Positions 11,007 through 64,000 of a stretch of DNA of 64,000 bases are shown piece by piece; position 1 is the stretch's first letter; each line of letters starts with the position of its first letter. Source of the DNA: Botryllus schlosseri (taxonomy: Eukaryota). Under the pieces are notes generated by a model. That model was not told the DNA's origin. It searched no databases and saw only the letters and a program-made list of their open reading frames with translations. The stretch covers positions 25,916,001-25,980,000 of the forward strand of contig CM119380.1 in NCBI GenBank assembly GCA_051294905.1, given 5' to 3'. The position numbers and the translations under genes are program-made.

Positions 11007-12122
11007 TAGGGCGATTTTTTTTCCGAAAAACCGGAAGATTTTGACCTAAAAAATCTAACTTTTGACATTTTTTCACCTTAAAAAACCTAATTTTGACAAA
11101 ATTTTGACCACATGTATATAAATTAGGTGTCTTCGCACATAATGTTAGAATTGTACTACTTATCTTCATTTCTGATTGGAACTATCTGTCATTACGAAAA
11201 AGTTTGACCAGAAAAAAAATTTGACTCGAAAACTGACAGATCTTTACATTAAAAAACTTTCTTTTAGCGAAATCTTGACCTATGAATAATTCTAGCAGTT
11301 ACATCACGCGTTATGGTAGAAATAATTGAAATTTCTTGTGGTACAACGAAAGATACTTTTCTACATTCCCGGGTAGAAAGTGTCTGTCCTTATGAAGTCA
11401 GATGTTGAACGACACGTTCTCTCATAATTGCCAATATAGTCAATTAGGTAAATTGGGCGTATTTTTATACAAAGGAATGGGTACAAAATGCAAGAAATCG
11501 AGTGACAATAAATCGCGCGAAGTGCTAAGAAAAATTTCAAGTCAAATAAATCTACCACGAAAATTCTACTTTATTGCCATAGGGAGATCTACGGAACATG
11601 TTGCTGGCCCCTGGCTACGCCAATGCGTCGGAACCGGTATTTAAAATCATAAACATCCCTAATTTTGCAGTCAGGCTCAGCGAGTTTTTGGTTGGTCTTG
11701 GAAATTCACAGTAAATTACCTGAGTAATTTAATATTTGATATTATAACTTATTTCGGTAATTATCTCGCGGGCCACTCAAAATCCTCTCGCGTGCCACAT
11801 TTGACCCGCGGGCCATGGGTTGGCCGCCCCTGAGTTAGGATATCTTGGTACGTCGAGCATGACATCATGTAAACCTATTTATTTCATTTGACCGTGTTTA
11901 TGATTCACAATGAGCTGACGAAGGGGAGTCTACAACGGTAGGCCTGTAAAGTAGGCTACTAACTATAAAATGTCAAATGACAAGTTCACCGACAGTACAA
12001 ACATCTACAATACAAACGAAATGCAGCTTGCAAATAAATTATGAATTTGTAAACAATTTTGACAATTTCTTGACCTAACACTACAATTTTGACTTTTTTT
12101 GACATGTCAAAAAATCGCCCTG
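11007..12122. mobile_element. Non-autonomous hAT element
   Basis: TIR TAGGGCGATTTTTT/AAAAAATCGCCCTG; TSD gtcacgac/gtcatgac (7/8). Related to 23791-24588. Confidence 0.8.
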
Positions 12123-19033: not shown

Positions 19034-22000
19034 CTAAACAATAAGTTTACCCATATTCATGCAAAGCGTTAACCCAAGTTTAGTATATCCGAGCGCAAAA
19101 ATACACAGCTTTATTAGACTAAGCTAAAGATTACTATAAACTCCGAATAAGACGCGCAACACGTGACTACACGGTTGGACAACCAAATTCGACTAGCTGG
19201 AAATCGGCATTGTTGCGAACCATCGGAGTGTCTCAATAGTTCATTGTTATGGTCTTTGTGTTGCGAGGGTTCAATTTCTCGAAAAAACGCAAGTTTTCGA
19301 CATTTTACTGGCTATTTTGGGATAGTTGCAGTACTACGCCTACCATATTTTCAGCATCCGGAAGGAGGACATATCTAGCCGACAATATAACGAAAGTAGA
19401 ATTGTTAAGTTTGAGTCTAATCATGTTTACATTTCGTAGTTGCAGGCATAAGTTACAAAAATCAAAGCAAAATTTAATAAACAGACACAAAATCAAACTG
19501 GCACCACATAAATTGCGACAGATCTTCGCGCGTAAAAAGGCCCAGATGGTGCGGAGAACGTCGAACAATGTTTGCAATAACAACCAAGAGTAGGGGCGAG
19601 CAACCAGCTATTCAGCAAGTCTCAGTAATCGTTTACAAATAAATTCTACGACTCGCCTAAAAGTCTTGTTGAAAGTCAAAGCAACTATAACGCGAATAAA
19701 GAGGACATTTGGACATTTCTTGCGTCCTCGGAGGATTACTCACTTTTCATGAGAAAAGACGACAAATCCTCCTATAAGAGGAAATATGGTAAGCCTATGC
19801 AGTGCCCTGATTAGGTCATAATTTATAATTTCGGAATCGGCGCTACAGTAACTTTCACCCATGACCACTTTCAATAAATGTTTCGATCGGGTCGCAAGCT
19901 ATAAAAAGGGGCTTCTTAGATTTGTGTCGCGGTCTAAAAAGTATGAATTTTATTGGCATCTCGCGAGTCAGGCCCAATACATCGAAATAATATAAGTTAA
20001 TGTCCGTATGCAGCGCTTTTACGGCCATGTATGAAATAGAGAAGGTGCATACAGCCAGTTGTACGCAATGTAGTTCTATGAAACATGTGTGACGCACGCG
20101 ATCACAAATTGGGGTGCATTATTTTCCTTGCGGACCGCATTTGTACGGCGGGTGTTAGATTACGAGAACGGGACTATACGGTGCCGACCATTTCAACGAT
20201 CGGACATATCAATATCGACCAGACAGCGACCGTCATTTTGGGTCAAGGTTTTATCGCCGCCATTTTTTTGACACCGCACTTTGCCGCATGTTGGTAAAAA
20301 CTTCATGTCCGCAAGTATCCTGGCGTAGAAAGGGTCGGCGCCGAAATACCTGGTATACCGCGCAGGTTAGGGATTTCCAGAGAAACCAATGTCAGACGAA
20401 TCTTAGCATAGCATCAAACCGATTTCTTTAATTACAAGATCAGCACATTTTCTTGATCAAGCCGTATTGTCGTAACCACATCTCGCTTATTGAGTACTCA
20501 GAGAGTACCCAACACGCTGACGTCGCACATGTGTAAACTAACCGTAGGAGATCACGCGAAACGCGAAGAATTTTTTTTGTGAAAGAAATTCAACTAATAT
20601 TATATACACACTAAGAGATTGCTCTGATGCCGCCGCGACCCTAAATTATACCCTTCGCGACCCACGTATGGGTCGCAACTCATACTTTAAGAACCCATGC
20701 TACAACATTACAATATCTGTTTACAAAGCTTTAAGGAATTGCCTTCTCTGGTTTGCCAACATTGCCGTATGTTACTTATATAGAAATGAGACACGCCTTC
20801 TCCCTCTCAACGGGCATTGTATTGCTATCGTGCTGCGTGATGTCGTAATAAGTGGCACACCCCTAACCATCTTAGCCACGCTCCTTCATTCCATACCAGC
20901 ATTGGGTACTTACGAAGCATGCACTTTGCGGAGTCAGTGACGAAGTGGCGCAGATTTGAAATTGCTGATCAAATATTAAATAGCGGGAAGCACACCCCGC
21001 GGCGGTTTGTACTGATAGCTGCGCTTCCTGTAGCAACACTGGCGATGCAAAACCTGTTGTAGGATCAGTGTCTAAAGAAAAATGGATCATTAGTGGGCTG
21101 GTGGGGTAAGAACATGTTCGTTTATCGACGGTAGCCTAAACTAGTGAACTGCGGTGATGGAATACTAAATGCAGTGGTTGATACTATTTGTAACGTCTAG
21201 GCCTGTGCAAAAACAAGGTACCTGAGGGATTAGTTTCTATTCAAGTCGAGTATCAACCATTATGACGTCACAACAGTGTCGATGATGTGGAAAGTTCAAT
21301 ATATACCCTTTTGAGACCACAAGGAATATAGCGTCTGTTCTACAGCATATAAATATTAATTTGGTTTTATTTCATTGCAGTTAGTGATAATGCTGTTGGT
21401 TGATTACGACTTCAGAAGATATGCCATTTCAACTAACGTGTGTAGCTTTGTTCTACACGTCTCGTGTGCTACGATACAATCAATCGAAGTTTACGGCCTT
21501 CCACCATAGTGTCCTATATGGTGTCGACACAGGCAAATCTCACGCCTCAGTGAAATTGTATCACGTCACAATTTACATTTGGCTACAGGCAATTTGACGG
21601 TCATTTTTGACCGGCTTGCCGAGCATTAAATTTGGTAAAACAGGTATCAATCGAAAGCTGACTCTGCACTGATTACGAAAATATAAATTTTATTCCGCTC
21701 GTGGCCTTGGAACTCCCACAATCAGTCTCGAATTTTTCATTGTTATGGAGATTTGCATTGGGACGCAACAATGCTGTCTGGCGAAACGAGAGAGTAGCTC
21801 AAGAGAAAATGAGCCAGACAGCATTGTTCAGCATTGTTGCGTCCCAATGCCAATCTCCATAACAATGAAAATTTCGAGGCTGATTGTGGGAGTTCCAAGG
21901 CCACGAGCGGAATAAATTTTATATTTTCGTAATCAGTGCAGAGTCAGCTTTCGATTGATACCTGTTTTACCAAATTTAATGCTCGGCAAGCCGGTCAAAA

Positions 22001-25000
22001 ATGACCGTCAAATTGCCTGTAGCCAAATGGAAATTGTGACGTGATACAATTTCACTGAGGCGTGAGATTTGTCTGTGTCGACACCATATAGGACACTATG
22101 CTTTCACAGTGGATAATATAGTATCGAAACTATAATTTTCGATGATGAATTAACTCTTTGTGGCAAGGATCATATAATTTCACCACTCGAAAAAATCATA
22201 TCTCCCTACTCGACTGGAATACCTAGAATTACACAGAGGTGGTCAAAGTAGTCAAGAAAGCTACTCAAGTAGAAGTAGAAGTAGTGATGAATAAATCTAC
22301 TCAAGTGCGAGTAGAAGTACTTCTTCCATAAGCAACCTAAAACTACTTGAAGTAGAAGTAGAATTGACTGACTTTAAATCTACTCAAGTAAGTAAGTAGT
22401 TGTTAAAACGATCGTAATTCGTTCACATGGATTGTCAAAAGGTGCAAATTGAACTATGCGAAAGGTGCAGAGCTTGATTCATATTGATTCATATCCAATT
22501 TTCGACAGTATAAGCATTCGTCCGCATCATGGGTTGAAATGATCGTATTGATATGGAAATGCGATACTAATCCTCTATTTACTCGAGCAGAACGTTTTAG
22601 AAAATATCATGGTATGGCGCCCTCCCCCATATTGTAAAACCTGTAGTTTAGTCGAAGAGCAATACGGAGAAGTTGTATAGGATACGGTGTAAACACTTTG
22701 CGCGATTAGTAAACTTTAAAAAATATGGTGGATCGAAAAAATGCCGAACTGTGTAGCTTTATTTCCGGAAATTAAAGGGATTACCACACTTGCTTTTATA
22801 CTACAACATGTATATTATCCAGACAAAAGAACTGATGTTAATTAGAACTCAAAGTATATGGTACTGGGAATTGAAAATTAAATAAAAATACTACTTCTGA
22901 AAGCGGAACATGTATTTCATGTCTTCAGTCCAGAAAGTTTCGAAGGTTGGTATGCTAAAACAGCTCTAAAACTAAAAAAAAGTCAGAGTCCACTTTTCCA
23001 GATTAGGACACGCCATGGACTTTTAGATTACGATATGATAAGTAAATGCTAGATTGAGAAACATCAGTTTCAAACGTTATGATGAGCCATAATATTATAT
23101 ACTGTGATGAAATATTTGATATGGCGAGCGGCGACAATGCGGTGTGCACGGAACCATGCCAACCCGCTACCTAAATTATATTCACCAATACTATAGTGAA
23201 ACCAAACCGGTTACCCCGTATCCACTGCGCGCGAAGCGCGACGAAAATTCTGGGCTTTACTTAAATTTTATGAAAATTAAATGTTGATGCTCCGTGAAAA
23301 CAGCCCCAAAATTCTTCAGGCTATCATCCCGATTGGAGGACTAAACTACTTCTACTTGACAAACTGAAAATAGCGAAAATTAAGTAAGTAGATCGCACAA
23401 TATTACGAAGTAGAAGTAGCAAAAATCAGATCTACTTGAGTAAGTACCAGAAGTAGAGGAAAACTACTTGAGTACTTCGAAAAAGTAGAAGTACTTCGTT
23501 ACTGACCACCTCTGGAATTACACTTTTCGATTTAAATTCGAGTACTCGACTCACTGTGCCCACCGCTAGTTACGTTCCCCGTTCATCACTTTTGGAACCT
23601 TTCCCCATACGGTATAAACAGATAGAATGCAAACATAGAAAGACTTAAGTATAAGTCTATGACCACTGGCGCTATAGTGTCGGTCCCCAGCATGGATGGC
23701 ATCCGGCTCCTCAGCTCTGACCTCTTCGGTACCCCGCGGCGGAGGTCCATGGACTTTAAGCTGAGAGCCGCGTGTATTATACACCATCACTATGGCGATT
23801 ATTTAACATGTCAAAAAAAAGTCAAAATTTTGTCGAAATTGTAGCGTTAGGTCAGAAATTGTCAAAATTGTTTACTAAGTCAAAAAAATGTTTGATCCCT
23901 GCATTTTGTTCGTATCGTATATTTTACAGCTTGTAGCCTACTTTATAGGCCTACCGTTGTAGACGGCCCATTGTCTGCTCATTGTGAATCATAAACGGCC
24001 AAATGAAACAAATAGGTTGACGTGGTGTTATGGTGAACGTACCGCAATATCCTAACTGAAGAAAGACTGCTTGGACATTGCATGGTTCTTATATCAAGAA
24101 GCACGTGATGAAAAATTGTGATGTAGGTAGACAACATTGCCAGAATGAAGCAACACGGTGTTTCACCAACAGTGTACGTACAACTTCAGTATTGTCAGCC
24201 AACAACTGCTGCTGTTGAACGTTCTTTCTCCATTTTTGGCAAGCTACTTGATAAGGACAGACCCTTTCTACCAGAGCATGTAAGAAAGTATCTTTCGTTG
24301 TACCACAACAAATTTTAATTATTTCTACCGTAATACGTGGTGTAACTACTGCAATTTTTCATAGGGCCAGATTTCGTTAAAATGTAAGTTTTTGATGAAC
24401 TTTTTTCGGGCCGAACTACTTCGTAAGGTCAGACAGTTCCAACCAGAAATGAAGATAAGTGGTACAATTTTAGCATTGAGGGCGAAAACACCTAATTTTC
24501 ATAAGTAAGGTCAAAATTTGGTCAAAATTAAGTTTTTTTAGGTCAAAAAATGTTAGTATTTTGATCTTATAGGTAAAAAATCGCTCTAACCATCATCAAT
24601 CAAGGTACAGCAATTACCTAATATGCTCAGATTTAATTATAAATGTTTATCTAATATTGCAACCAATACCTCCCCATCCGGTAATAACGCAATTCATCCC
24701 CGGTGCGGGATCCTCCCCCATTGGTAGGCTCAGGGGCGTGGCGTAGGAAGGAACTTCTCTGAAAAGCTGACACGCGCACACGTTTAACAAACGAAATGTT
24801 GATGACTGTGACAAACTAGTACCTTCAACACCATGATATCATGGAAGACATCTGTGTAAAAGGGGAACGGGATCGCTTCGGCTACTGTTATATCCTCGCC
24901 AAGGTTAATATCGATCGATCCCGCCCGTACAAATCCAGCTTCACTACCCGTAATGATGCCGTTCGTTGATCTAGAAATTTCCGCGATAGATTTGCTTTGT

Positions 25001-31000: not shown

Positions 31001-34000
31001 TGTGTGGTGTATGACGTGTGTGTGTTAGAACTTAGAAGACAATTACTGTTATCAATGATCCGCTTCATGCTTGACTGAGCCAGGATATGGATTACTAACC
31101 TACGTCAGAAGTTTCGCCTTTGTCAAATGTTTTCCCCCTCCTGCTATCAGACTATGCCAAGTTGTCTCAACACTCTAAACTCGCATGTGTACTGCACCCT
31201 ATGATACAGGTGCGGAATTGCGGTAGGCTACGGTATCTATATAATACCGCATTGGACTATACTATAATAGGCCTACTGTTCGAAAAAAATCATGTTACGA
31301 ATAAAAAAAAGCACAGAACCATATCAATTTACTGGTGATAAAAGCGAGTAATGCAGCAACCATTCGACTCATCGTATGAAACTCGTAATAAAATTCATAA
31401 CCATCCCCTGAATTACAGTTCCTATATGTAGTCACAGCGTGACCAAGAGTACTGACAATACATCGACATTACTTCCAATTTATGCATCTCGTGAGTTTGA
31501 AACTATTCGTTGATCCCTGATTAGTTTGCCATACAAGATACTGCAACTGCGTAACTGCATCTGATCGAAAATTGGGACATCCAATATGTAGCAGGATAAC
31601 ATCACACACACAGTGGACCATGTCCGGCACAGCATAAAAGCAAATACTCGCTCGAGCTGGACTGTTTCACAGTGTTGGGATCAAGTCACTACCTTCGAGT
31701 CACGAGTCATTTCGAGTCATTACACATTTTGACTCGAGTCAAGTCAAGTCAATCGATTTTCGAAGGTGACTCGAGTCAAGTCAAGTCACTCGATTTTTGG
31801 AGGTGACTCGAGTCAAGTCGAGTCAAGTCAAGTCAAGTCACGAGTCAAGTCACAATTCAAGTCAAATTGCCTTTTCGAGTTATGAGGCGTGATTACGTCA
31901 TTGTATTTTGCTAGCTGTCTGAAATGCTGATTGAGTGGTCATTGATTTTGAACAGATGACGGAATGTAGAGTTGAATATACACGGAAGCAAGGCGCTGCA
32001 TCGCTCTCATATAAGTAGAACCAATAAACTACGTAAGTAATTGCACAGCCTCAGTTACCAGCCAAAATAGAGAATAGAGAAACGAATTGATAAGATGCAA
32101 TACATTACCCTTTTGCAAACGGAGGCTACACTCGAAGGGGAACCGATCACGCATTCAAAATTAGCAATCAGAATCTTCATAGAATCTGTCCCACTGAAGG
32201 CCTTTCAGCATTCATTGATCACCAACAAGCTAAATTTCTTGCACACATAATTTAGGGTTACCATATTTTCGTTTCACAAATTCCGAACGCTCTTCAGCGC
32301 CCACTGGCGGATTACCAAATCAGGTGTGAGCACATTGTCGACTAATCCTACATCGTTAAGTCATGTTCACGTCACGCTGGTAACATTATTTATCAGCCTA
32401 TTGCCGATGTGCACTGCACCACTGAGTTATATAAACACCGCGTATCCGGTGGTTTCCAACCTTTTATGATCGCGACTTCATTTCCAATTTGAAAATGTGC
32501 CGCAGTCCAGCTCAAAATTTGATGAGCTGATTACTAATTAGAGGTCGGCACATTTGTCCACACTTACTCACGGCCTATTATGGAAGCTAATTACGTTCAA
32601 CATCTCCGCGAACCCCAGAATAAAGGTAAACTACCCCCGGGTTTAAAACCATCATCTTTGAATATAAAGCATCCAAACGGCCTGCCCTAAACCGACTATA
32701 TGAATATATCGTTATTTTGTAATTGCGATTACAATTAGACTTCTTTTGTAGATGAAGGTTATTTATTATTTATTTGTGATCGCAGTTTTTACGAGGGTGG
32801 TAGTCCCCATATTAATACCAGTATATATGACACTAAATCGTGCGCAGCGCGAAGAAATATTTCATGTAGCATAAATCTGCCCAAAAATAATCTTGTTTAT
32901 ATTGATTTACGAAAAAATTATGAGGCCTTCGAAATTTCGGACATTTAGGCATATTTTAGAAATTCCTCCCGGACGCATTTTTTACAGTGAAATTCCGGAC
33001 ATGTCCGGGAAATTCCGGACGTATGGCAACCCTAACATAATCCGAAAACATAATGACAGTGTCGTGAAGTTCAATAACGTTTGAAGATGAAAGAAGTACG
33101 AAAAAAGGAAGACCCTCCGCAACGCTGATGAACAATGTCCTCAATCGGAACGACACCGACATCAGGACATTCTCAAAAGCAGCACTTTCAAGGGAAATTT
33201 AATTTATAACTTAAATCTTTGATGCTCTCTTTTTTGATGAATACTGCCATCACCTCGGTGATGGTGCTCTAAGTCTGAACGCAGACAGAGCTAGACCTAT
33301 ATATATATATAAATTGATATGATACAATTCGAGCCTGCGCCAATGGTTGATAACTATGTAAAGTATTTTCGAATTCAATTGCAATAAAACAATAGATTTT
33401 GTTAAGTTAAGTACACAGAACAGAAATAGACATTTTGCTATTAAATTACTTTACTATACTATAGTTTACGACAACGTAGGTTGTAAGCTTCGATCACTTC
33501 GTTTGCGATCAATATATTTGTGAGAGAACAATGGAGGCTCAGTAAAACGCACGATCATTGAATGATTGGTCGCTCTCGCGGGTTACACCAGCGTTGCGCG
33601 AACAATCCGAACATATGCAAGATACAGTGATTTTCATCGACACTGATTGCTTGATGACTTGAAATTGACTCGTGAATTTTGCTCCGAGTCAGTAGTCAAT
33701 TCGCATTTCTTATAGGCCGAGTCAAGTCAAGTCAAGCCATTTTAGCAAAGTGACTCGAGTCAAGTCAAGTCATGCGAAAAAGTGACTCGAGTCTGACTCG
33801 AGTCAAGTCATGACTAGAGTCATCCCAACACTGCTGTTTCATGATAACAATCGATAACGTAAGATTATACTTACGATGCGGCTACGCATACCTGGATGCT
33901 CTAAAATAGAAACAAGCAAATACGTTAATCATTTCGTATGTACTTTTGTTTGGCGACTTTTAGGGTTTGTTGTGCACTTATTATATGATATATGCCAGCA

Positions 34001-48694: not shown

Positions 48695-49366
48695 TGGGGT
48701 TGCCATACGTCCGGAATTTCCCGGACATGTCCGGAATTTCACTGTTCAAACTGTGTCCGGAAGGAATTTCTAAAATATGCCCAAATGTCCGGAATTTTGA
48801 AGGCTTGAAGTAAGCTCATAACTTTTTCATAAATCAATATAAACAATATTATTTTTGGGAAGAATTATGCTACATGCAATTTTTCTTCGCGCAGCGCGCG
48901 ATTTAGTATCACATATATTGGTTTTAATATGGGGACTACCAGCCTCGCCAATACTGCGATCAAAATAAAAAAAATAGCATTCATTTACAGAAATAAGTCT
49001 AATTGTAATCGCAATAACAAGATAACGGTATATTCATAGAGTCGGTTTAGACCGTTTGGATTCAATGGATATTCAATGTGGTTCTAAACCTGGGTGTAGT
49101 TTGCCTTCATTATGGGATTCGCGAAGATGTTGAACGTAGTCAGCCTCCAAAATAGGCTTTGACTAAGTCTGGGCAAATTTGCCGACCTTTATTTAGTAAT
49201 CAGCTTGTCAAATTAGTAGCTGGGCCACGGCAAATTGGAAATGGAGTCGCGACCATAAAAGGTTGGAAACCACTAGATGTGCGGTGTTTATATATCTCAG
49301 TGGTTCAGTGCGGACCGGCATTAGGCTGATAAATAATCTAATCGGGGTGACATGAACATGACTTAA
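48695..49366. mobile_element. hAT MITE interrupted by the giant palindromic element
   Basis: Reverse-complement homolog of 32355-33034; starts TGGGGTTGCCATACGTCCGG. Homology resumes after 63975. Confidence 0.85.
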
Positions 49367-52300
49367 AGTAGTATATAAATGGGCGGAATCCCCTCATTCG
49401 CGATTTATAATAAACAAACAAAGATTATCAGTATAATAAACAATTAAAGAATTACCCGATTCTCATTTTTGCAGCAATACTTTTATGACCCTGTGTGCGG
49501 CAATCAAAAAGGGGGAATAATTAACGCTAGAGAGAAAAAGAACAAAGAATCTCGATTGACCTTTGTACTCTGGCCAGACATGAAACTTATTGATTAGTAA
49601 TTCTACTTGTACTTTTCCACTCGCCTCCTGATTTAATCTGTCTCGCTCGACCTCTGGACAAGGACACGAAACTAGAGCTGACTTCGGTCGTACGCGACGG
49701 GGCTTGGTAATAGTTGCCTGCCGACAAATCGCCCTGACCTATCGTTTTGTGGTCCAATTTCGTGACGGGGCTTTAGGAATAATTGCCCGTCAAACCACCC
49801 TGGTTGACTTGTCGTTTCGCGGTTGACTCGATTTCTTGTACGGGGGGGGGCATAGGAATAATTATCGGTCGTGACGTGAATAAAGTTTTCTCCTGATCGG
49901 TGAGATCCTGGTGCGTGTTTTAGGTGTCTATACGTTCGGCTGTGCATTGTGACGCTTGTAGTCTGTTCCATACTGTCGTACTTGCTCTTGCTTTGTTGTC
50001 GACTTAAATAGTAAGGAGAAATGATCTGTTCTGGTTATAAATATGTGTATCATTTTGAGTCATATCGAGAACCAGAAAGAATGTCGTGTATTAGAAATAG
50101 GTATTAGGCGCCCCCGACATAGATTAACTTAAATAAAGTAACATTTAAAATATAATAAGTAATTAGAGAAATAGCTGATTCTCAATTTTGCTCGCATCAA
50201 CGTGTTAACCCCCGGTATTACGTACCTAGTATTCGGTGCAAGCGGCAAATGTCGCTGTTCCATACCTATACCGCGTTCTAGCGTCTTAGGACAGACAGTC
50301 CGATCCGAACAATGTATTTATGATGGGTTCTTTTTACTGCTTCACGTCCGGTCAAGCGTAATCATACCAGTGCCTATAAATGATACGTAATTTACCGCGG
50401 GATATTAATTTTGTATGCTGTATATGATATACAACTTGAATCGATCAGTTGTCGAACTGATGCTTTACCCGTCTGTACGATCGATCACGAGCTCACCACG
50501 CACTTGTCGTTCGAGAGCGACTCATTTCGCTATAGACAATCAGTTGTGTTCGCGTGTACCGTAACATATCCTCAACACTTGTTATGCCAACGCCTCCACG
50601 CGTGTTTACAATATCATACTAAGGAACTATTGCTTCGGCAGCCACGCACTGTCGCTCGAAGTCAACAAATTTCGCTGCAGACAGTCAGTTGTAGGCCTAT
50701 TCGCGTATGTGTCGTAAATATATCCTCAACACATGTTATGCCAATACCTCCAAGCATATTTGCGGCATCATAATACGGGTATATTGATTCGGGGGATTGT
50801 TACCGTCAGAGAATTGCTGTGTCACCCCTTTTAGCCTCGCATTTCTCGTTCGAACTCGGTAACTGCGAGTGCGATGTCAGATTCAATTGTACAGTGACGA
50901 ATCGGGGTAGCTCGCTTCATCGGGGATCAGTGGACTGTCTTATTTGTCTGAAACGCGCTCGGTGGTGCAATAATGGGGATGAATTGTGACAGATCATATG
51001 TGATGCGATCTATAGCCTCCTTTCGGTGAGGATGAGTGGGAGATTTCGAAATCGGAATCCACTGCGACTATAGGATTGCAAAATCAAAGTCCAAAAAATC
51101 CGACTGACACGTAAATTCCTGGTTTCTCCGTATATTAGGCTGGGTAAAATGTAACATAAATCCGACTCTCACTTGGACGCATCCAGTCCGGGTTTAACCA
51201 AAACTGATGAAATCTGCGCCGGGTCCGGAAACGAATCGTGACCACCCCGTCCAGACAAAACAGTTCCGTTGTAAGGGGAGTGTCGTTGTACATTAATTTG
51301 CATACAGCGAAACTTTGTATCGACTCATTGTCGGACTTCTGTTTGTCTGTACAGGTGTTATTAGTGTAATTAGATTTGGTACCACAAGGAGCATATTGGT
51401 AAAATCACACAACGATAACAACTTTACCCGCCAACAACTCACATGGGATACATCAGAGGTCTCAAACACGCGCCCCGCGTTTTAGCCACGAGGACGCCAT
51501 TATTTTCGAAACACTAACAAGGTGGTTATTTTGTGTATCTGACGATGAAATTGCACTAAAATCACATCGAACATAGTAGGATCCTAAATAAAATAAGAAA
51601 CTTTCATTCCGCGACCTCAATAGTTACGTTTCACCTAGCTATATTACGGTTATTTTTGTAAGAAACAAGTCAAAAAGTAATATATTATCGTAAAACTCAC
51701 CAAGTCTCCTTTCAGCTTCAGAAATTAAGGTGACAGCTCAGTCTGACCATTAGGCATTCGTTAGGCTATTGTGACTCATTCAACACTCACTTTGTTTGGT
51801 AACAGCGATGGTGGGCGTCTTACCTTACATGGGGTGTTTTACCCCACTCTACCCTAATATAGAGCCTATCAAGTACAAGAAAAATTCTATCCAAATAGTT
51901 ATAAATCCGATGATTCTTTTCGTGCCAGGTCTAAATTGATACAAGAGTAAATCAAATTTTGACGATGTGTGTTTACTTTCAGCCTGCGGGATCGGCTCGC
52001 TTTCAATAGGACAATAAACTCCTGCCAAATAAGGCCTACTTGGAAAGACTCGGAATACTCCTATAAATGCTGCCCGCCTGTTTGACAAAACTCGCGTTTT
52101 CTGGTTGACAGCAATGCGATCCATTTGATGTCCCCATCGACCCTCCTATTTTGATGGGATTACCATACGGCCTCATTCAAGGGAGCATATGTCCTCCTTT
52201 TCCCAGATATGTCAGCCCATTCGGCCAAATGTACTCTCTTTCTGTCAATTTGTCCTCCTTGTTAGCTTAACATATCCAAAAAAACACCACTAGTAACGCA

Positions 52301-55300
52301 AAATGTGGGCCTAGATTACAAAAGTCGGGTACGTGGCCAAATCGGAAAAATGACGCTATGATGGTATTGTGCAGGCTATTACGTGGATACGGGGCCTGTG
52401 TAAACAGGTTTATGTGAATAGTAAAAGCGCGCCAAACTATCGTTACATGAAAAAGATCGAGCACACTCGACCATGTCGGGGTATACTTACCCTAGTACAG
52501 CCAAATGCTCCCATGTCGTAGCGGGAATAACCGGGGAGCATGGTAAATAATTCTCACAAGAAGTACTTTATAACGGTGTGAAATCTACGTCGTTCGTTAC
52601 GCGACGAGAATGAAGCAAGGCGCCACTGCAATCACTCTCTACACAACGTGCTAAGCACTGTAGGGGATACGCAACTACCGATTCTGGTCCGAGGAGCGAG
52701 ATATATGTAACGATTTACGACACATGCTAAATTTCCTTTCAAATGAAGTACAAAATGTGGCTTTTGAAGTACTCAAGTAGAAGTAGTTTTAAATAATAGT
52801 TGGTATCGTAAAATTACTTTCTAGTTTCATTATAAAGAGTAGGTTCCCATAGAACTGTCGAACCCAAGCACTTCAATATCCTATACCCAGCCCACCGACT
52901 GCAGAAGCTGCCCATCCCCGATGTAACATGTAAATGGTGCAATAGCGACAGCTAACGGTTGTCAATCATCCATAAAAAAAAAACTAGCCAGTAATACAGC
53001 CCTCAAGGATAACCTAGGAATATCTATGCGAGTCGACTCGATTGGCCCATGCGGCAAGTTTAGACACGAAAGCATTTTTAGGTGTGATATAATCCCAGTA
53101 TTTGTACTGTATTTTTCCAAGCACACATACCACAATCGAAAACGTAGTTCGCCCGTCTGACTCCCAACATTTGCCTCGAACAAAAGTGTCGGGTATATGT
53201 GACCATGGATGTACGACAAGTCTGTCCACCACTTTTGAGTAGATATTTGGAAAGACCGGCTCGTGATCACCTCCATACAAGGCATAATAGTTCTGCGTGC
53301 AGCGAAACTTTGCAGCGACCTATTTGCGGGGTGTGCATGTGTTGTTAGTGCAATCGTGTTTAGCACAACAAGAACGTAGTAATTTGAGGGTGAATAAAAT
53401 CTTACCCCACAACGATACCAACTTTACCCCCTCAACGACTCCAACGGGATGTATTTATGTGGATTTCATATTATTATGAAAAGCTAATCGACCACAAGAT
53501 ACTGTTACGTGCCATCCCCTTCGGTAGAGTTGTTAGTATTGTAACATGATGATCGGGAGCTATGACCTTTTACCCCCAGGTCTAAAAGGGTAGGAGAATT
53601 AGTTAGTGATACACCCGTCGGACGGTGTGGTATTCGACAAAATCACTCTGTTTTTACTACGGAAACGATGATCACACTGACGGGCTCTCATCACTTGTCG
53701 TACGAATGCTTGTAATTTCGGTTTGATGTGCGCAAATCAGCTGTGATCATTCGAGTGTGACGCGATCGAGGTCAGTCCTATCAGGTGTTTGAGAAAACTC
53801 GTATATTCAGTAAGGTTGACGGCAATGCGATATATTTGATGTCCCATTGATCCTCATACTAATAGGGGGATTGTCATACGTCCTCCTTCTCCAGGAAAAT
53901 ATCCTCGCACAAATGCACTCCTTTTTGTGAATTTATCTTCCGTTTTAGCTTAAAATACCCAAAAAATACCATGAATAACGCGAAATAAGGACCTACGAGA
54001 TACGGGCAGGGTCTATCTTACTGTTTTCGCATAATCGTGTTATTCAAATGTAGGATTTTGGTGTAGGTCTGATTGATAACTTTATAAAAGTGCGGTAAAC
54101 TCAGTACAAAACTACTTTCTGCTTTTTAAAGTCAAACGTGTAAAGAATATGTAATTTCACCTGAAACGGTTGAGGAGTAAGTTAAAACGACTTGGGTATA
54201 TAGCACAAGTACCGAGTACTCGAATTAGTAGCGTGACACCATTACTCAACCAAGTCCACAACACACAAACCGAGGAAATAATATACAGATATGGAAATAA
54301 CCCACGATATTTTCCGCTGACACGTGTCAGTACAACTCGACATTCAAGTCCATCTGGCTGCGGCTTGCAATTTGAAAGAGTTTGAAAAACCAGGGTGGTA
54401 GCCTATACCTAAAAACGTGGTATTGTTTTGTACGTTACGATTCTTTCTAGCCAGTTCGTCAGCTGCTAAATTAGTGCGTGTTGCATATGATACTTTAGAT
54501 AATTCGGCGAACGTTGCGAGTCTGCAGAATTCACAGCGGTGATAACTCGACGCAATGAATACGTGTTTCTATCCTAGCGGATCAAAGTGTCTCTCCATCC
54601 TCGTTATGCCAAAACACTTTTGTAAACACGGCGTATTAAAACAGACGTAGCCATCATAAAATCAACCAAAACCAATGTTCCATAGCGAATCTGATGTTAT
54701 CGATGACAAAAGTTATGGCCACCTCGTCTATGTCTAGCTCTATGGTACAACATGTCGAATTTTGTTTGCCAATCCCCGTCGGTTCAGTACAAGGCACGTG
54801 ATCTCAATAAAAACGAACGCGCAACCGAAACAGGTGAACTTTGTGTGATGTGTATTTTTGATAACACCGATATGGCAAACTTAAATCTCTCTGCTGACAA
54901 TAAAGTTGCTTATAATTAATCAAGCAACCCGGGGAGCAACAACTCGTAAACACGAATCGAATGGTCACGCCAACATCCCCGGGTATTCGATAGAACCGCT
55001 AATACCGCGGTAACCCAACTTCTGTAATCGTACATGTACGAAGCATTTGAATAGTGTTGCTCTGTGGCTCTTGGACTTCCAAGGACACTACGAGCGTAAG
55101 TCAATCTCACTGTTTGGAGTGCTAATGTCGCACCGTCGCAATAATGATCACTCGCTTATGTGTAGAAAGCGGAAATTGACGCCTGGGTTATTTGTACGAC
55201 CTCATAGCTTTGGTAAACTTACTAAAGCGGAAAGTCTCTGACAAGTTAGACATTGATTGATGTTCGTTCTCTTGCTAGCGATGATAATCGTTGGTACATG

Positions 55301-58300
55301 CTTTAAATTTTTTGTTATAATCGGGTGTGGTCACAAATAGACAGGGAACAACTTTGATGCGTTCAACAGAATACGCATGTAACACATCTTATTCCGGGCC
55401 GTAACCTATCGTTTTCCCCCACCTTCTATATGATAAACGTCGCCTTTACTCAGGGGTGTGCCGATGACCTAAGGAACCACAGGCTCTAACGTGTCATTTC
55501 GTTACTATTTCAACGTCACATGACAGCGTAGGTAGGCGTTGGGGTATGGTGCCCATCAATACAGTGTTGAACGCGATCCATAAGGACACCCACTTCGTGC
55601 TATACGTTTAAATAAATATTTTTACTCGTTACTACCACCTGGTGCGGGGTAGTGAGGTTGGTACAAAATTGAAACAGCCAATATAAACTAGGGGCTTATT
55701 ATTATTAATTATTAAACATCGTGTCCAGCTGCTTATAGAACGAAGGTTTTCTGCACCACAAACCAGTTCATTACACCTAATAACACAAGGGAAATTGTGT
55801 GTAAAGTACCATCCCATAACACATACTCAAAATCAACTAGTGATTTTCAAATGGATGTTATTGTGCTTTGCAATGGTTGTTAGCGGACATGGGGTGATAA
55901 TTTCATCAATATAATCGATTGCGATTACTGTTGTCACGGGACTATAACTACGGTTACAGAAAAATCTTGAAGTAGTCGAAACGTAATCACTAGCGTGCTA
56001 TTGTTTTACTCATTTTCCCCGTCATATGGCACCGACTATAAGCATTGATACAATACAGAGTATTGAACGTGATCCTTATAAGCATTGATACAATGTAGCA
56101 TTGACCGCGATCCGTGAGGACCCCTGCTGTGTGCTATTATGTCTAAAATTTATCACTCGTGACCACCACCGTGTGCGAGTTATCAATAAACCACAGAAAC
56201 GCCACTAAGCATAGGAGGAGGTAAATCCCCTACTCTGCCTAGTTTCAAATAGTAACGCAATTACTGACGTTTCGTTGAGTTAAACACAGTTTGAACGCTG
56301 CTGCTTAGCGGGCGGTAGGCCTATGTACAGCGGACATTAATTTGAAATTTTACACTCATTAAATAAATTCATGACAATTTCAAAGCATTAAAATCAACCG
56401 GTGCTAAAACAAATCATACAGTAAATTATACATAAATTATATCTCAAGTTTCGTGTCCTTGTCAAGAGGTCAAGCGTGGCGACTCACGCAGATAGCTAGT
56501 TTATTCTTTTTCGCTACGACATCTCCCCTTTTGATTGCCGTACAACGGGTTATAAAAGTATTGCTACAAAACTGGGAATCAGCTATGTCTTTAATTATCT
56601 ATCATATTGATAATATTGGTTTATTTAAGTTAAATCTTTGTTTGGACGTCTAATGCACATAGACGGGGCTTAGACGTAGTTATATAAGTGTGTATTAAAC
56701 GTCCAAACAAAGATTTAACTTAAATAAACCAATATTATCAATATGATAGATAATTAAAGACATAGCTGATTCCCAGTTTTGTAGCAATACTTTTATAACC
56801 CGTTGTACGGCAATCAAAAGGGGAGATGTCGTAGCGAAAAAGAATAAACTAGCTATCTGCGTGAGTCGCCACGCTTGACCTCTTGACAAGGACACGAAAC
56901 TTGAGATATAATTTATGTATAATTTACTGTATGATTTGTTTTAGCACCGGTTGATTTTAATGCTTTGAAATTGTCATGAATTTATTTAATGAGTGTAAAA
57001 TTTCAAATTAATGTCCGCTGTACATAGGCCTACCGCCCGCTAAGCAGCAGCGTTCAAACTGTGTTTAACTCAACGAAACGTCAGTAATTGCGTTACTATT
57101 TGAAACTAGGCAGAGTAGGGGATTTACCTCCTCCTATGCTTAGTGGCGTTTCTGTGGTTTATTGATAACTCGCACACGGTGGTGGTCACGAGTGATAAAT
57201 TTTAGACATAATAGCACACAGCAGGGGTCCTCACGGATCGCGGTCAATGCTACATTGTATCAATGCTTATAAGGATCACGTTCAATACTCTGTATTGTAT
57301 CAATGCTTATAGTCGGTGCCATATGACGGGGAAAATGAGTAAAACAATAGCACGCTAGTGATTACGTTTCGACTACTTCAAGATTTTTCTGTAACCGTAG
57401 TTATAGTCCCGTGACAACAGTAATCGCAATCGATTATATTGATGAAATTATCACCCCATGTCCGCTAACAACCATTGCAAAGCACAATAACATCCATTTG
57501 AAAATCACTAGTTGATTTTGAGTATGTGTTATGGGATGGTACTTTACACACAATTTCCCTTGTGTTATTAGGTGTAATGAACTAGTTTGTGGTGCAGAAA
57601 ACCTTCGTTCTATAAGCAGCTGGACACGATGTTTAATAATTAATAATAATAAGCCCCTAGTTTATATTGGCTGTTTCAATTTTGTACCAACCTCACTACC
57701 CCGCACCAGGTGGTAGTAACGAGTAAAAATATTTATTTAAACGTATAGCACGAAGTGGGTGTCCTTATGGATCGCGTTCAACACTGTATTGATGGGCACC
57801 ATACCCCAACGCCTACCTACGCTGTCATGTGACGTTGAAATAGTAACGAAATGACACGTTAGAGCCTGTGGTTCCTTAGGTCATCGGCACACCCCTGAGT
57901 AAAAGCGACGTTTATCATATAGAAGGTGGGGGAAAACGATAGGTTACGGCCCGGAATAAGATGTGTTACATGCGTATTGTGTTGAACGCATCAAAGTTGT
58001 TCCCTGTCTATTTGTGACCACACCCGATTATAACAAAAAATTTAAAGCATGTACCAACGATTATCATCGCTAGCAAGAGAACGAACATCAATCAATGTCT
58101 AACTTGTCAGAGACTTTCCGCTTTAGTAAGTTTACCAAAGCTATGAGGTCGTACAAATAACCCAGGCGTCAATTTCCGCTTTCTACACATAAGCGAGTGA
58201 TCATTATTGCGACGGTGCGACATTAGCACTCCAAACAGTGAGATTGACTTACGCTCGTAGTGTCCTTGGAAGTCCAAGAGCCACAGAGCAACACTATTCA

Positions 58301-61300
58301 AATGCTTCGTACATGTACGATTACAGAAGTTGGGTTACCGCGGTATTAGCGGTTCTATCGAATACCCGGGGATGTTGGCGTGACCATTCGATTCGTGTTT
58401 ACGAGTTGTTGCTCCCCGGGTTGCTTGATTAATTATAAGCAACTTTATTGTCAGCAGAGAGATTTAAGTTTGCCATATCGGTGTTATCAAAAATACACAT
58501 CACACAAAGTTCACCTGTTTCGGTTGCGCGTTCGTTTTTATTGAGATCACGTGCCTTGTACTGAACCGACGGGGATTGGCAAACAAAATTCGACATGTTG
58601 TACCATAGAGCTAGACATAGACGAGGTGGCCATAACTTTTGTCATCGATAACATCAGATTCGCTATGGAACATTGTTTTTGGTTGATTTTATGATGGCTA
58701 CGTCTGTTTTAATACGCCGTGTTTACAAAAGTGTTTTGGCATAACGAGGATGGAGAGACACTTTGATCCGCTAGGATAGAAACACGTATTCATTGCGTCG
58801 AGTTATCACCGCTGTGAATTCTGCAGACTCGCAACGTTCGCCGAATTATCTAAAGTATCATATGCAACACGCACTAATTTAGCAGCTGACGAACTGGCTA
58901 GAAAGAATCGTAACGTACAAAACAATACCACGTTTTTAGGTATAGGCTACCACCCTGGTTTTTCAAACTCTTTCAAATTGCAAGCCGCAGCCAGATGGAC
59001 TTGAATGTCGAGTTGTACTGACACGTGTCAGCGGAAAATATCGTGGGTTATTTCCATATCTGTATATTATTTCCTCGGTTTGTGTGTTGTGGACTTGGTT
59101 GAGTAATGGTGTCACGCTACTAATTCGAGTACTCGGTACTTGTGCTATATACCCAAGTCGTTTTAACTTACTCCTCAACCGTTTCAGGTGAAATTACATA
59201 TTCTTTACACGTTTGACTTTAAAAAGCAGAAAGTAGTTTTGTACTGAGTTTACCGCACTTTTATAAAGTTATCAATCAGACCTACACCAAAATCCTACAT
59301 TTGAATAACACGATAATGCGAAAACAGTAAGATAGACCCTGCCCGTATCTCGTAGGTCCTTATTTCGCGTTATTCATGGTATTTTTTGGGTATTTTAAGC
59401 TAAAACGGAAGATAAATTCACAAAAAGGAGTACATTTGTGCGAGGATATTTTCCTGGAGAAGGAGGACGTATGACAATCCCCCTATTAGTATGAGGATCA
59501 ATGGGACATCAAATATATCGCATTGCCGTCAACTTTACTGAATATACGAGTTTTCTCAAACACCTGATAGGACTGACCTCGATCGCGTCACACTCGAATG
59601 ATCACAGCTGATTTGCGCACATCAAACCGAAATTACAAGCATTCGTACGACAAGTGATGAGAGCCCGTCAGTGTGATCATCGTTTCCGTAGTAAAAACAG
59701 AGTGATTTTGTCGAATACCACACCGTCCGACGGGTGTATCACTAACTAATTCTCCTACCCTTTTAGACCTGGGGGTAAAAGGTCATAGCTCCCGATCATC
59801 ATGTTACAATACTAACAACTCTACCGAAGGGGATGGCACGTAACAGTATCTTGTGGTCGATTAGCTTTTCATAATAATATGAAATCCACATAAATACATC
59901 CCGTTGGAGTCGTTGAGGGGGTAAAGTTGGTATCGTTGTGGGGTAAGATTTTATTCACCCTCAAATTACTACGTTCTTGTTGTGCTAAACACGATTGCAC
60001 TAACAACACATGCACACCCCGCAAATAGGTCGCTGCAAAGTTTCGCTGCACGCAGAACTATTATGCCTTGTATGGAGGTGATCACGAGCCGGTCTTTCCA
60101 AATATCTACTCAAAAGTGGTGGACAGACTTGTCGTAGATCCATGGTCACATATACCCGACACTTTTGTTCGAGGCAAATGTTGGGAGTCAGACGGGCGAA
60201 CTACGTTTTCGATTGTGGTATGTGTGCTTGGAAAAATACAGTACAAATACTGGGATTATATCACACCTAAAAATGCTTTCGTGTCTAAACTTGCCGCATG
60301 GGCCAATCGAGTCGACTCGCATAGATATTCCTAGGTTATCCTTGAGGGCTGTATTACTGGCTAGTTTTTTTTTTATGGATGATTGACAACCGTTAGCTGT
60401 CGCTATTGCACCATTTACATGTTACATCGGGGATGGGCAGCTTCTGCAGTCGGTGGGCTGGGTATAGGATATTGAAGTGCTTGGGTTCGACAGTTCTATG
60501 GGAACCTACTCTTTATAATGAAACTAGAAAGTAATTTTACGATACCAACTATTATTTAAAACTACTTCTACTTGAGTACTTCAAAAGCCACATTTTGTAC
60601 TTCATTTGAAAGGAAATTTAGCATGTGTCGTAAATCGTTACATATATCTCGCTCCTCGGACCAGAATCGGTAGTTGCGTATCCCCTACAGTGCTTAGCAC
60701 GTTGTGTAGAGAGTGATTGCAGTGGCGCCTTGCTTCATTCTCGTCGCGTAACGAACGACGTAGATTTCACACCGTTATAAAGTACTTCTTGTGAGAATTA
60801 TTTACCATGCTCCCCGGTTATTCCCGCTACGACATGGGAGCATTTGGCTGTACTAGGGTAAGTATACCCCGACATGGTCGAGTGTGCTCGATCTTTTTCA
60901 TGTAACGATAGTTTGGCGCGCTTTTACTATTCACATAAACCTGTTTACACAGGCCCCGTATCCACGTAATAGCCTGCACAATACCATCATAGCGTCATTT
61001 TTCCGATTTGGCCACGTACCCGACTTTTGTAATCTAGGCCCACATTTTGCGTTACTAGTGGTGTTTTTTTGGATATGTTAAGCTAACAAGGAGGACAAAT
61101 TGACAGAAAGAGAGTACATTTGGCCGAATGGGCTGACATATCTGGGAAAAGGAGGACATATGCTCCCTTGAATGAGGCCGTATGGTAATCCCATCAAAAT
61201 AGGAGGGTCGATGGGGACATCAAATGGATCGCATTGCTGTCAACCAGAAAACGCGAGTTTTGTCAAACAGGCGGGCAGCATTTATAGGAGTATTCCGAGT

Positions 61301-63969
61301 CTTTCCAAGTAGGCCTTATTTGGCAGGAGTTTATTGTCCTATTGAAAGCGAGCCGATCTCGCAGGCTGAAAGTAAACACACATCGTCAAAATTTGATTTA
61401 CTCTTGTATCAATTTAGACCTGGCACGAAAAGAATCATCGGATTTATAACTATTTGGATAGAATTTTTCTTGTACTTGATAGGCTCTATATTAGGGTAGA
61501 GTGGGGTAAAACACCCCATGTAAGGTAAGACGCCCACCATCGCTGTTACCAAACAAAGTGAGTGTTGAATGAGTCACAATAGCCTAACGAATGCCTAATG
61601 GTCAGACTGAGCTGTCACCTTAATTTCTGAAGCTGAAAGGAGACTTGGTGAGTTTTACGATAATATATTACTTTTTGACTTGTTTCTTACAAAAATAACC
61701 GTAATATAGCTAGGTGAAACGTAACTATTGAGGTCGCGGAATGAAAGTTTCTTATTTTATTTAGGATCCTACTATGTTCGATGTGATTTTAGTGCAATTT
61801 CATCGTCAGATACACAAAATAACCACCTTGTTAGTGTTTCGAAAATAATGGCGTCCTCGTGGCTAAAACGCGGGGCGCGTGTTTGAGACCTCTGATGTAT
61901 CCCATGTGAGTTGTTGGCGGGTAAAGTTGTTATCGTTGTGTGATTTTGCCAATATGCTCCTTGTGGTACCAAATCTAACTACACTAATAACACCTGTACA
62001 GACAAACAGAAGTCCGACAATGAGTCGATACAAAGCTTCGCTGTATGCAAATTAATGTACACCGACACTCCCCTACAACGGAACTGTTTTGTCTGGACGG
62101 GGTGGTCACGATTCGTTTCCGGCGCAGATTTCATCAGTTTTGGTTAAACCCGGACTGGATGCGTCCAAGTGAGAGTCGGATTTATGCTACATTTTACCCA
62201 GCCTAATATATGGAGAAACCAGGAATTTACGTGTCAGTCGGATTTTTTGGACTTTGATTTTGCAATCCTATAGTCGCAGTGGATTCCGATTTCGAAATCT
62301 CCCACTCATCCTCACCGAAAGGAGGCTATAGATCGCATCACATATGATCTGTCACAATTCATCCCCATTATTGCACCACCGAGCGCGTTTCAGCCAAATA
62401 AGACAGTCCACTGATCCCCGATGAAGCGAGCTACCCCGATTCGTCACTGTACAATTGAATCTGACATCGCACTCGCAGTTACCGAGTTCGAACGAGAAAT
62501 GCGAGGCTAAAAGGGGTGACACAGCAATTCTCTGACGGTAACAATCCCCCGAATCAATATACCCGTATTATGATGCCGCAAATATGCTTGGAGGTATTGG
62601 CATAACATGTGTTGAGGATATATTTACGACACATACGCGAATACAACTGACTGTCTGCAGCGAAATTTGTTGACTTCGAGCGACAGTGCGTGGCTGCCGA
62701 AGCAATAGTTCCTTAGTATGATATTGTAAACACGCGTGGAGGCGTTGGCATAACAAGTGTTGAGGATATGTTACGGTACACGCGAACACAACTGATTGTC
62801 TATAGCGAAATGAGTCGCTCTCGAACGACAAGTGCGTGGTGAGCTCGTGATCGATCGTACAGACGGGTAAAGCATCAGTTCGACAACTGATCGATTCAAG
62901 TTGTATATCATATACAGCATACAAAATTAATATCCCGCGGTAAATTACATATCATTTATAGGCACTGGTATGATTACGCTTGACCGGACGTGAAGCAGTA
63001 AAAAGAACCCATCATAAATACATTGTTCGGATCGGACTGTCTGTCCTAAGACGCTAGAACGCGGTATAGGTATGGAACAGCGACATTTGCCGCTTGCACC
63101 GAATACTAGGTACGTAATACCGGGGGTTAACACGTTGATGCGAGCAAAATTGAGAATCAGCTATTTCTCTAATTACTTATTATATTTTAAATGTTACTTT
63201 ATTTAAGTTAATCTATGTCGGGGGCGCCTAATACCTATTTCTAATACACGACATTCTTTCTGGTTCTCGATATGACTCAAAATGATACACATATTTATAA
63301 CCAGAACAGATCATTTCTCCTTACTATTTAAGTCGACAACAAAGCAAGAGCAAGTACGACAGTATGGAACAGACTACAAGCGTCACAATGCACAGCCGAA
63401 CGTATAGACACCTAAAACACGCACCAGGATCTCACCGATCAGGAGAAAACTTTATTCACGTCACGACCGATAATTATTCCTATGCCCCCCCCCCGTACAT
63501 GAAATCGAGTCAACCGCGAAACGACAAGTCAACCAGGGTGGTTTGACGGGCAATTATTCCTAAAGCCCCGTCACGAAATTGGACCACAAAACGATAGGTC
63601 AGGGCGATTTGTCGGCAGGCAACTATTACCAAGCCCCGTCGCGTACGACCGAAGTCAGCTCTAGTTTCGTGTCCTTGTCCAGAGGTCGAGCGAGACAGAT
63701 TAAATCAGGAGGCGAGTGGAAAAGTACAAGTAGAATTACTAATCAATAAGTTTCATGTCTGGCCAGAGTACAAAGGTCAATCGAGATTCTTTGTTCTTTT
63801 TCTCTCTAGCGTTAATTATTCCCCCTTTTTGATTGCCGCACACAGGGTCATAAAAGTATTGCTGCAAAAATGAGAATCGGGTAATTCTTTATTTGTTTAT
63901 TATACTGATAATCTTTGTTTGTTTATTATAAATCGCGAATGAGGGGATTCCGCCCATTTATATACTACT
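49367..63969. mobile_element. 14.6-kb palindromic non-autonomous element with Polinton/Maverick-type ends
   Basis: Termini AGTAGTATATAAAT...ATTTATATACTACT. 6-bp TSD ACTTAA at 49361-49366 and 63970-63975. Arms 49367-56649 and 56699-63969 are reverse complements. Longest ORF is 134 aa with no recognisable domain. The palindrome and TSD are directly seen; the Polinton assignment is inferred from end and TSD type. Confidence 0.85.
56650..56698. other. 49-bp spacer / imperfect hairpin at the palindrome centre
   Basis: Perfect symmetry stops at 56649/56699. The next 10 bp pair 8/10, leaving a 29-nt loop at 56660-56688. Confidence 0.9.
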
Positions 63970-64000
63970 ACTTAACGATGGACGATTACCCTCCTTGCAT

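Follow-up and report, generated by a model that had tools for sequence, protein, structure and literature searches.

Analysis of a 64,000-nt stretch of contig CM119380.1 (assembly GCA_051294905.1, positions 25,916,001 to 25,980,000 of the forward strand), called the window below and used for all position numbers, identified a gene-less palindromic insertion of 14.6 kb at 49367-63969. The reading that we favor, with a probability of roughly 55%, is that this element is non-autonomous and of the Maverick/Polinton type, a tail-to-tail dimer that would have arisen as a product of free linear DNA and would have been integrated in trans. In an earlier account of the locus, made from the letters alone (the original prediction), the palindrome was described as one element; what is new here is that each arm is a complete unit, having a second end of its own. 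Throughout the text, L denotes the outer end of a unit and R its inner end.

Inverted-repeat detection and blastn placed the left arm at 49367-56649 (7283 bp) and the right arm at 56699-63969 (7271 bp), with a spacer of 49 bp between them (56650-56698); the arm lengths, the reverse complementarity, and the spacer given in the original prediction were reproduced to the base. When two mismatches were allowed, pairing reached 56659/56689 and the unpaired centre shrank to 29 nt. In a gapped alignment the two arms differed by 19 substitutions, with two more adjoining the centre, and by four indels of 1, 6, 6, and 1 bp, the substitution divergence between the arms being 0.26%. The G+C content of the arm (41.8%) is like that of the surrounding DNA, and its CpG observed/expected ratio of 1.17 likewise matches the value of 1.07 found for the flanking 49 kb. 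By blastn, the arm showed no similarity to the remaining 49 kb of the window, and Rfam and tRNA scans of the 64-kb window gave no matches.

The element starts with AGTAGTATATAAAT… and finishes with …ACTACT, and its outer L terminus, AGTAGTATATAAA (49367-49379, plus strand), carries the end motif (AGT)2. The hexamer ACTTAA stands directly outside both borders, at 49361-49366 on the left and at 63970-63975 on the right. The window holds 23 x 21 AGTAGT/ACTACT pairs, and the one at 49367/63969 alone has identical 6-mers on its outer sides. The insertion lies in a copy of a host repeat (48697-49366, plus strand), which resumes past 63970. An inverted paralogue of this repeat, about 82-93% identical, is present uninterrupted on the minus strand at 32349-33032 and was used for an empty-site comparison; being a diverged copy, it is a stand-in for the true empty site, and both junctions were compared with it separately, as separate pieces. 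The paralogue reads …CATGACTTAACGATG… across one ACTTAA (32356-32361). It matches the left flank up to …CATGACTTAA and the right flank, ACTTAACGATG…, from the same ACTTAA onward. Short satellite-like arrays lie beside this paralogue at 31730-31865 and 33725-33793, with a 37-bp unit and (AGTCA)n.

The paralogue, being uninterrupted and having ACTTAA as a single copy, shows that this hexamer was duplicated on insertion, as a 6-bp target-site duplication (TSD), and fixes the borders at 49367 and 63969. The original prediction had proposed AGTAGT…ACTACT ends, an exact ACTTAA on both flanks, and a mobile insertion with a 6-bp TSD, and the comparison with the paralogue upholds all of these. The mirror symmetry ends exactly at the element borders; the flanks are non-palindromic and continue one host repeat, and an L end adjoins the flank on each side. 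The marks of a fold-back artefact, mirrored flanks and identical arms, were not found at the locus. As the symmetry stops at the ends, the host repeat continues, the arms differ privately, and the centre is asymmetric, the palindrome is identified as a genuine insertion with a 6-bp TSD and not as a fold-back artefact of the assembly, a small residual doubt being kept for its interior.

The centre of the palindrome is not a simple turning point. Unit A, the non-coding left arm, occupies 49367-56659 on the plus strand; it begins with the L terminus and closes with an R end that lacks its final 13 nt. Unit B lies on the minus strand (56676-63969) and has its L terminus at 63969 and its R terminus, GTAGTTATATAAG, at 56676-56688, this R terminus being complete or short by at most 1 nt. 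The sequence GTAGTTATATAAG at 56676 equals the outer terminus GTAGTATATAAAT plus one extra T, and it stands 36 nt ahead of a conserved block, a distance also seen at the outer end. When one edit was allowed, the terminal 11-mer was counted seven times over the two strands of the window, with ends of the element making up three of these occurrences. The R end reads …GTAGTT…, and its terminal sequence is not the same as that of the L end.

The conserved subterminal block of the L end (49402-49516, plus strand) is 80% identical to 56522-56636 in inverted orientation, and 49644-49677 is 91% identical to 56443-56476, also inverted. The R end of unit A (56443-56659, minus strand) is therefore recognizable by these two blocks, 56443-56476 and 56522-56636, as an inverted and diverged homologue of the L end that is 13 nt short. 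Four occurrences of the block AGCAATACTTTTATNACCC exist in the window, where 0.1 are expected by chance: exactly one per unit end, always facing inward. Between the two R ends lies a filler of 16 nt, TAGACGGGGCTTAGAC (56660-56675). This filler holds GACGGGGCTT, a 10-mer that is found elsewhere in the window only in the subterminal repeats of the arm at 49696 and 49764 and in their mirror copies. At the junction, one R end has lost 13 nt and the other 0-1 nt.

Because the centre bears a second terminus and an inverted subterminal block, each arm is a whole unit, and the sequence identifies the element as a tail-to-tail dimer of complete units of about 7.3 kb, in the order L…R-filler-R…L. The original prediction had proposed a Polinton whose terminal inverted repeat (TIR) had grown over the whole element; this part of it did not hold, given the second terminus at 56676 and the inverted block of 80% identity. 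Inside the unit, all on the plus strand, are three subterminal direct repeats of about 25 nt with a spacing of 69-79 nt (49696-49870), two of them beginning with GACGGGGCTT, a partial direct copy of the terminal block (50117-50191), and a tandem duplication of about 146 bp with 74% identity (50496-50792). An old internal direct duplication of about 1 kb is also present, the first copy (51299-52313, plus strand) being 67-84% identical, with indels, to the second (53294-53995, plus strand).

The arm is non-coding, with open reading frame (ORF) lengths that match random sequence. Its longest start-to-stop ORF measures 134 aa and its longest stop-free piece 153 aa, and no start-to-stop ORF of 150 aa exists in the whole 64-kb window. 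We observed 45 stop-free pieces of at least 50 aa in the arm, compared to 44.6±5.4 in sequences simulated with a first-order Markov model of the dinucleotide make-up of the arm, and the longest piece (153 aa) compares to a simulated maximum of 126±23 aa. A Pfam scan of all 45 pieces gave only noise (best E=0.08), and relics of polymerase, integrase, ATPase, protease, capsid, or transposase genes were not found among them. The ten longest ATG-initiated ORFs of the arm had no exact match in a collection of 15 billion proteins, and a homologue search with a 120-aa piece from near the terminus gave no candidate. The spectral power at period 3 was 0.28-1.57 in the arm, around the window median of 0.83, and thus gave no period-3 signal. 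The earlier description of the element as ORF-less is borne out by the Pfam result, the random-like ORF lengths, and the period-3 analysis. The strongest period-3 signals of the window were located at 31.8-33.0 kb and 48.6-49.8 kb, on both copies of the host repeat, and no protein-like ORF was seen at either place.

In vertebrate Mavericks, 5'-(AGT)2//(ACT)2-3' is the commonest end motif and occurs with perfect 6-bp TSDs (Barreat & Katzourakis 2021, PMC8097293). Intact vertebrate copies measure 12.7-24.6 kb and have TIRs of 46-1447 bp (PMC8097293), and a survey of nematode Mavericks gave 13-25 kb as the size, 100-1500 bp for the TIRs, and 5-8 bp for the TSDs. In Repbase, non-autonomous DNA transposons are classed by their termini and TSD length, the rule being that TSD length is shared and that the termini can be aligned over positions 1-11 with one mismatch allowed (PMC4455052). 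The element has a perfect 6-bp TSD and TIRs of the form 5'-AG…CT-3' with a short tandem motif (AGTAGT…ACTACT), and with 14.6 kb it lies within the size range of vertebrate Mavericks; both the Polinton-type hallmarks and the Polinton size that had been claimed for it thus agree with the published survey (PMC8097293). Unlike a Maverick/Polinton, it carries neither genes nor relics for pPolB, integrase, ATPase, protease, or capsid, and its inverted repeat takes up the whole length, with 7.28 kb per arm compared to 46-1447 bp (PMC8097293). The virion module of Mavericks/Polintons (major and minor capsid proteins, packaging ATPase, and adenain-like protease) gave no Pfam match. As these gene-based defining features are absent, the element could at most be a non-autonomous Maverick derivative. 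Judged by its ends, TSD, and size, it is non-autonomous and of the Maverick/Polinton type; it works like this kind and probably derives from it, which is short of demonstrated membership.

An L end stands at each border, with a single 6-bp TSD enclosing the two, so the dimer was inserted as a unit, the whole 14.6 kb entering the host repeat as one piece via its two identical outer L ends. Integration would have occurred in trans, through the retroviral-type (rve) integrase of an autonomous Maverick acting on the two identical L ends; we propose this enzyme because a 6-bp TSD together with (AGT)2/(ACT)2 ends is the Maverick signature. The dimer itself would have formed while the unit was free linear DNA, and two routes can be envisaged. 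In one of them, host end-joining would link the R ends of two linear copies, which is proposed because small deletions and partly self-templated filler are typical of such joints. In the other, synthesis at the R end would add a few bases, fold back, and copy the new strand; snap-back copying of this kind is known for defective genomes of protein-primed replicons. The sequence reads the same way for either route and cannot separate them. With two good L ends, the dimer would stay integrable despite a poor R end, and it is a speculation that dimerisation may have supplied such ends to a unit of poor mobility. The arms being 0.26% apart and the TSD intact, the insertion seems to be recent, unless the arms were homogenised by gene conversion.

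Several observations weigh against the Maverick assignment. No relic of a Maverick gene was found by Pfam, and the link to Mavericks is made through six terminal bases and the TSD length. The motif survey cited above was done in vertebrates (PMC8097293), and the window shows no CpG depletion, its host being probably non-vertebrate. While intact Mavericks usually have near-identical TIRs, the L and R ends of the unit are only about 80% alike, and 7.3 kb free of any coding trace exceeds what is usual in a deletion derivative. A second copy, a monomer, or an autonomous partner was not found in viral or metagenome contigs or in protein collections, and exact-match scans of viral and JGI metagenome contigs with the subterminal block and the 26-nt terminus gave 0 matches; the collections scanned for copies hold no eukaryotic genome, and these negatives say little on family status. 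The 64-kb window itself holds no intact Maverick. In addition, the right flank inside the window comprises 31 bp only, and the centre is known from the assembled sequence alone.

The missing gene relics and the short terminal link also speak for an element of the same dimer architecture that belongs to another or undescribed cut-and-paste superfamily with a 6-bp TSD and is moved by a DDE transposase. Imperfect TIRs of 80% identity and subterminal repeats are the usual anatomy of non-autonomous cut-and-paste elements, and 6-bp TSDs are reported for a few other superfamilies, namely IS3EU, Dada, and some hAT. Nevertheless, transposase relics of any superfamily are likewise absent. According to an argument reportedly made by Kapitonov and Jurka in 2006, a short-tandem-repeat terminus is expected of protein-primed replicons, and this counts against such a superfamily. 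Furthermore, (AGT)2//(ACT)2 ends with a perfect 6-bp TSD are a documented Maverick signature (PMC8097293). We therefore regard a cut-and-paste origin as unlikely on balance, although it deserves to be taken seriously. That a Polinton lost one side and that snap-back then doubled the remaining half, the arm being an arbitrary left portion, would account for the palindromic structure and the Polinton-like size. Defective genomes of protein-primed replicons are known to take palindromic form, examples being the incomplete-particle DNA of adenovirus and hairpin and palindromic derivatives of yeast linear killer plasmids. However, the centre is not arbitrary, as a second terminus and an inverted subterminal block are present there, and the arm has neither a Polinton gene relic nor a period-3 signal, so that this course of events appears very improbable. 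A turn-round of copying right at the end of a whole unit is a different matter; it is possible and is kept within the dimer explanation.

Near-perfect long palindromes are a known class of artefact in long-read libraries, and the structure is known from the assembly, with 31 bp of right flank in the window; a fold-back chimeric long read or a mis-join could thus have made the palindrome. Against this, the palindrome ends exactly at the element borders and the host repeat continues across the duplicated ACTTAA, and since an L end meets the flank on either side, inverted copies are required for the outer parts at the least. Moreover, the arms differ by the 19 substitutions and four indels, two of which are 6 bp long, and the centre lacks symmetry: in place of a clean mirror it has a filler and a single complete R terminus. 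Hence there is little room for an assembly artefact. Smaller still is the chance that a single unit was inserted first and that the host later turned it into a palindrome on the spot, by an inverted duplication arising through replication template switching or the repair of a break. Inverted duplications in chromosomes whose turn-round point carries a short filler reportedly occur (PMC4689423, PMC12807874). Yet such an event would also duplicate flanking host DNA or leave an R end at one border, whereas here both borders are L ends at copies of one TSD and the host repeat resumes where the paralogue predicts. Two further candidates were rejected: a nested insertion of one unit in the end of the other, as nothing of the missing 13 nt is left between the right L end and the TSD, and a retrotransposon with long terminal repeats (LTRs), as the ends of the unit and of the whole element are inverted and not direct.

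The dimer was also compared to other known systems. Butterfly Polintons are genuine insertions with gene-carrying TIRs of about 2 kb, and like the element they have a TIR enlarged via inverted duplication of internal sequence (bioRxiv 10.1101/2025.02.07.637071). These Polintons keep a unique core and all core genes, whereas the element is unique only in its 29-nt centre. Drosophila FB, Galileo, and foldback miniature inverted-repeat transposable elements (MITEs) resemble it in consisting almost entirely of inverted repeat, in being ORF-less, and in presumably being moved in trans. FB makes 9-bp and Galileo 7-bp TSDs, and their arms are composed of tandem subrepeats. In contrast, the element has a 6-bp TSD, (AGT)2 ends, and complex 7.3-kb arms with their own inner ends, and tandem repeats cover few short stretches of the arm. 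In adenovirus incomplete-particle DNA and in the hairpin and palindromic derivatives of the yeast pGKL linear plasmids, too, an inverted dimer bears one functional end in two copies and needs a helper to be replicated. While those genomes are extrachromosomal and usually partial, the element is chromosomal with a TSD, and its arms are two-ended. In composite transposons, such as the insertion sequence (IS) composites of bacteria and double-Ds of maize, or in macrotransposition, two inverted copies move via their outermost ends. The element is like IS composites and double-Ds in that inverted copies travel as one unit by the outer ends; it is unlike them in that the inner ends are joined by a 16-nt filler, in that there is no cargo, and in its type of end and TSD. 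A literature search on palindromic or non-autonomous Polintons and on defective palindromic protein-primed genomes gave nothing that describes this configuration, that is, no gene-less, wholly palindromic, dimeric element of the Maverick type.

According to the standard model, Mavericks/Polintons are excised, copied by their own protein-primed polymerase, and re-integrated (bioRxiv 10.64898/2026.07.28.741278). Their movement has so far been deduced almost wholly in silico. As an end-to-end joined dimer with a clean 6-bp TSD is hard to make unless a linear double-stranded copy exists in the free state, the locus suggests a natural record of a free linear Maverick-type DNA intermediate. About 7 kb of gene-less DNA apparently uses the Maverick machinery in trans; the terminus and the subterminal block of about 115 nt are what its two ends have in common, and this bears on the needs of Mavericks in cis. 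A near-perfect palindrome of 14.6 kb, possibly located in an intron of a protease cluster, is moreover likely to be unstable and to give rise to hairpin RNA. Although it is a single locus, it would represent a rare natural footprint of the linear intermediate and of trans-mobilisation of gene-less DNA, a significance that is conditional and holds only if genome-wide copies and raw reads bear out the single locus.

A more far-reaching idea is that gene-less palindromic satellites of Mavericks form a family that propagates itself, the locus being one of its members. Their non-coding units would be copied and integrated wholly by the polymerase and integrase of a helper, and tail-to-tail dimerisation would give back two good ends and raise the length to that of a full Maverick, perhaps to fit the capsid of the helper. 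We consider this quite doubtful. If it were true, the element would be a chromosomally fixed, defective-interfering-like hyperparasite of a virus-like transposon and the first trace left in a genome by a free linear DNA intermediate of Mavericks.

The window further contains tandemly duplicated multi-exon genes on the minus strand, in which N-terminal cysteine-rich repeats are followed by a trypsin-like protease domain. Exons were mapped by tblastn with P0001, the 465-aa trypsin-domain product of Logan transcript contig SRR32906212 (44% identical), which was the only match of a full HMMER search with a 142-aa exon piece from the window. Those of copy A extend from 36901 to 18827, those of copy B from 45577 to 41473, and those of copy C from 1662 to 816, all on the minus strand. 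The copies are direct repeats about 21-22 kb apart, and one or two of the three are partial in the window. Pfam gave nothing at E <= 0.01 for ten exon-like pieces of the window, and a homologue search with a 144-aa window piece gave no match. Upstream exons of copy B were not seen before 49366 by tblastn with P0001, and we infer that the palindrome occupies an intron of copy B or, if that copy is truncated, lies upstream of it.

Other repeats are present in the same region. A second, small foldback element lies at 21505-22100. Its two arms, each of 272 nt and 98% complementary to one another, enclose a centre of 52 nt, and its ends read CATAGTGTCCTATATGG…; its sequence is not similar to that of the large palindrome, and it resembles a foldback MITE from a different family. 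Several further inverted repeat pairs, at 3462-4721 with 19999-20560 and at 11039-11971 with 23921-24579, show 81-89% identity at distances of 12-17 kb and are probably other interspersed repeats or an inverted segmental duplication in the protease cluster.

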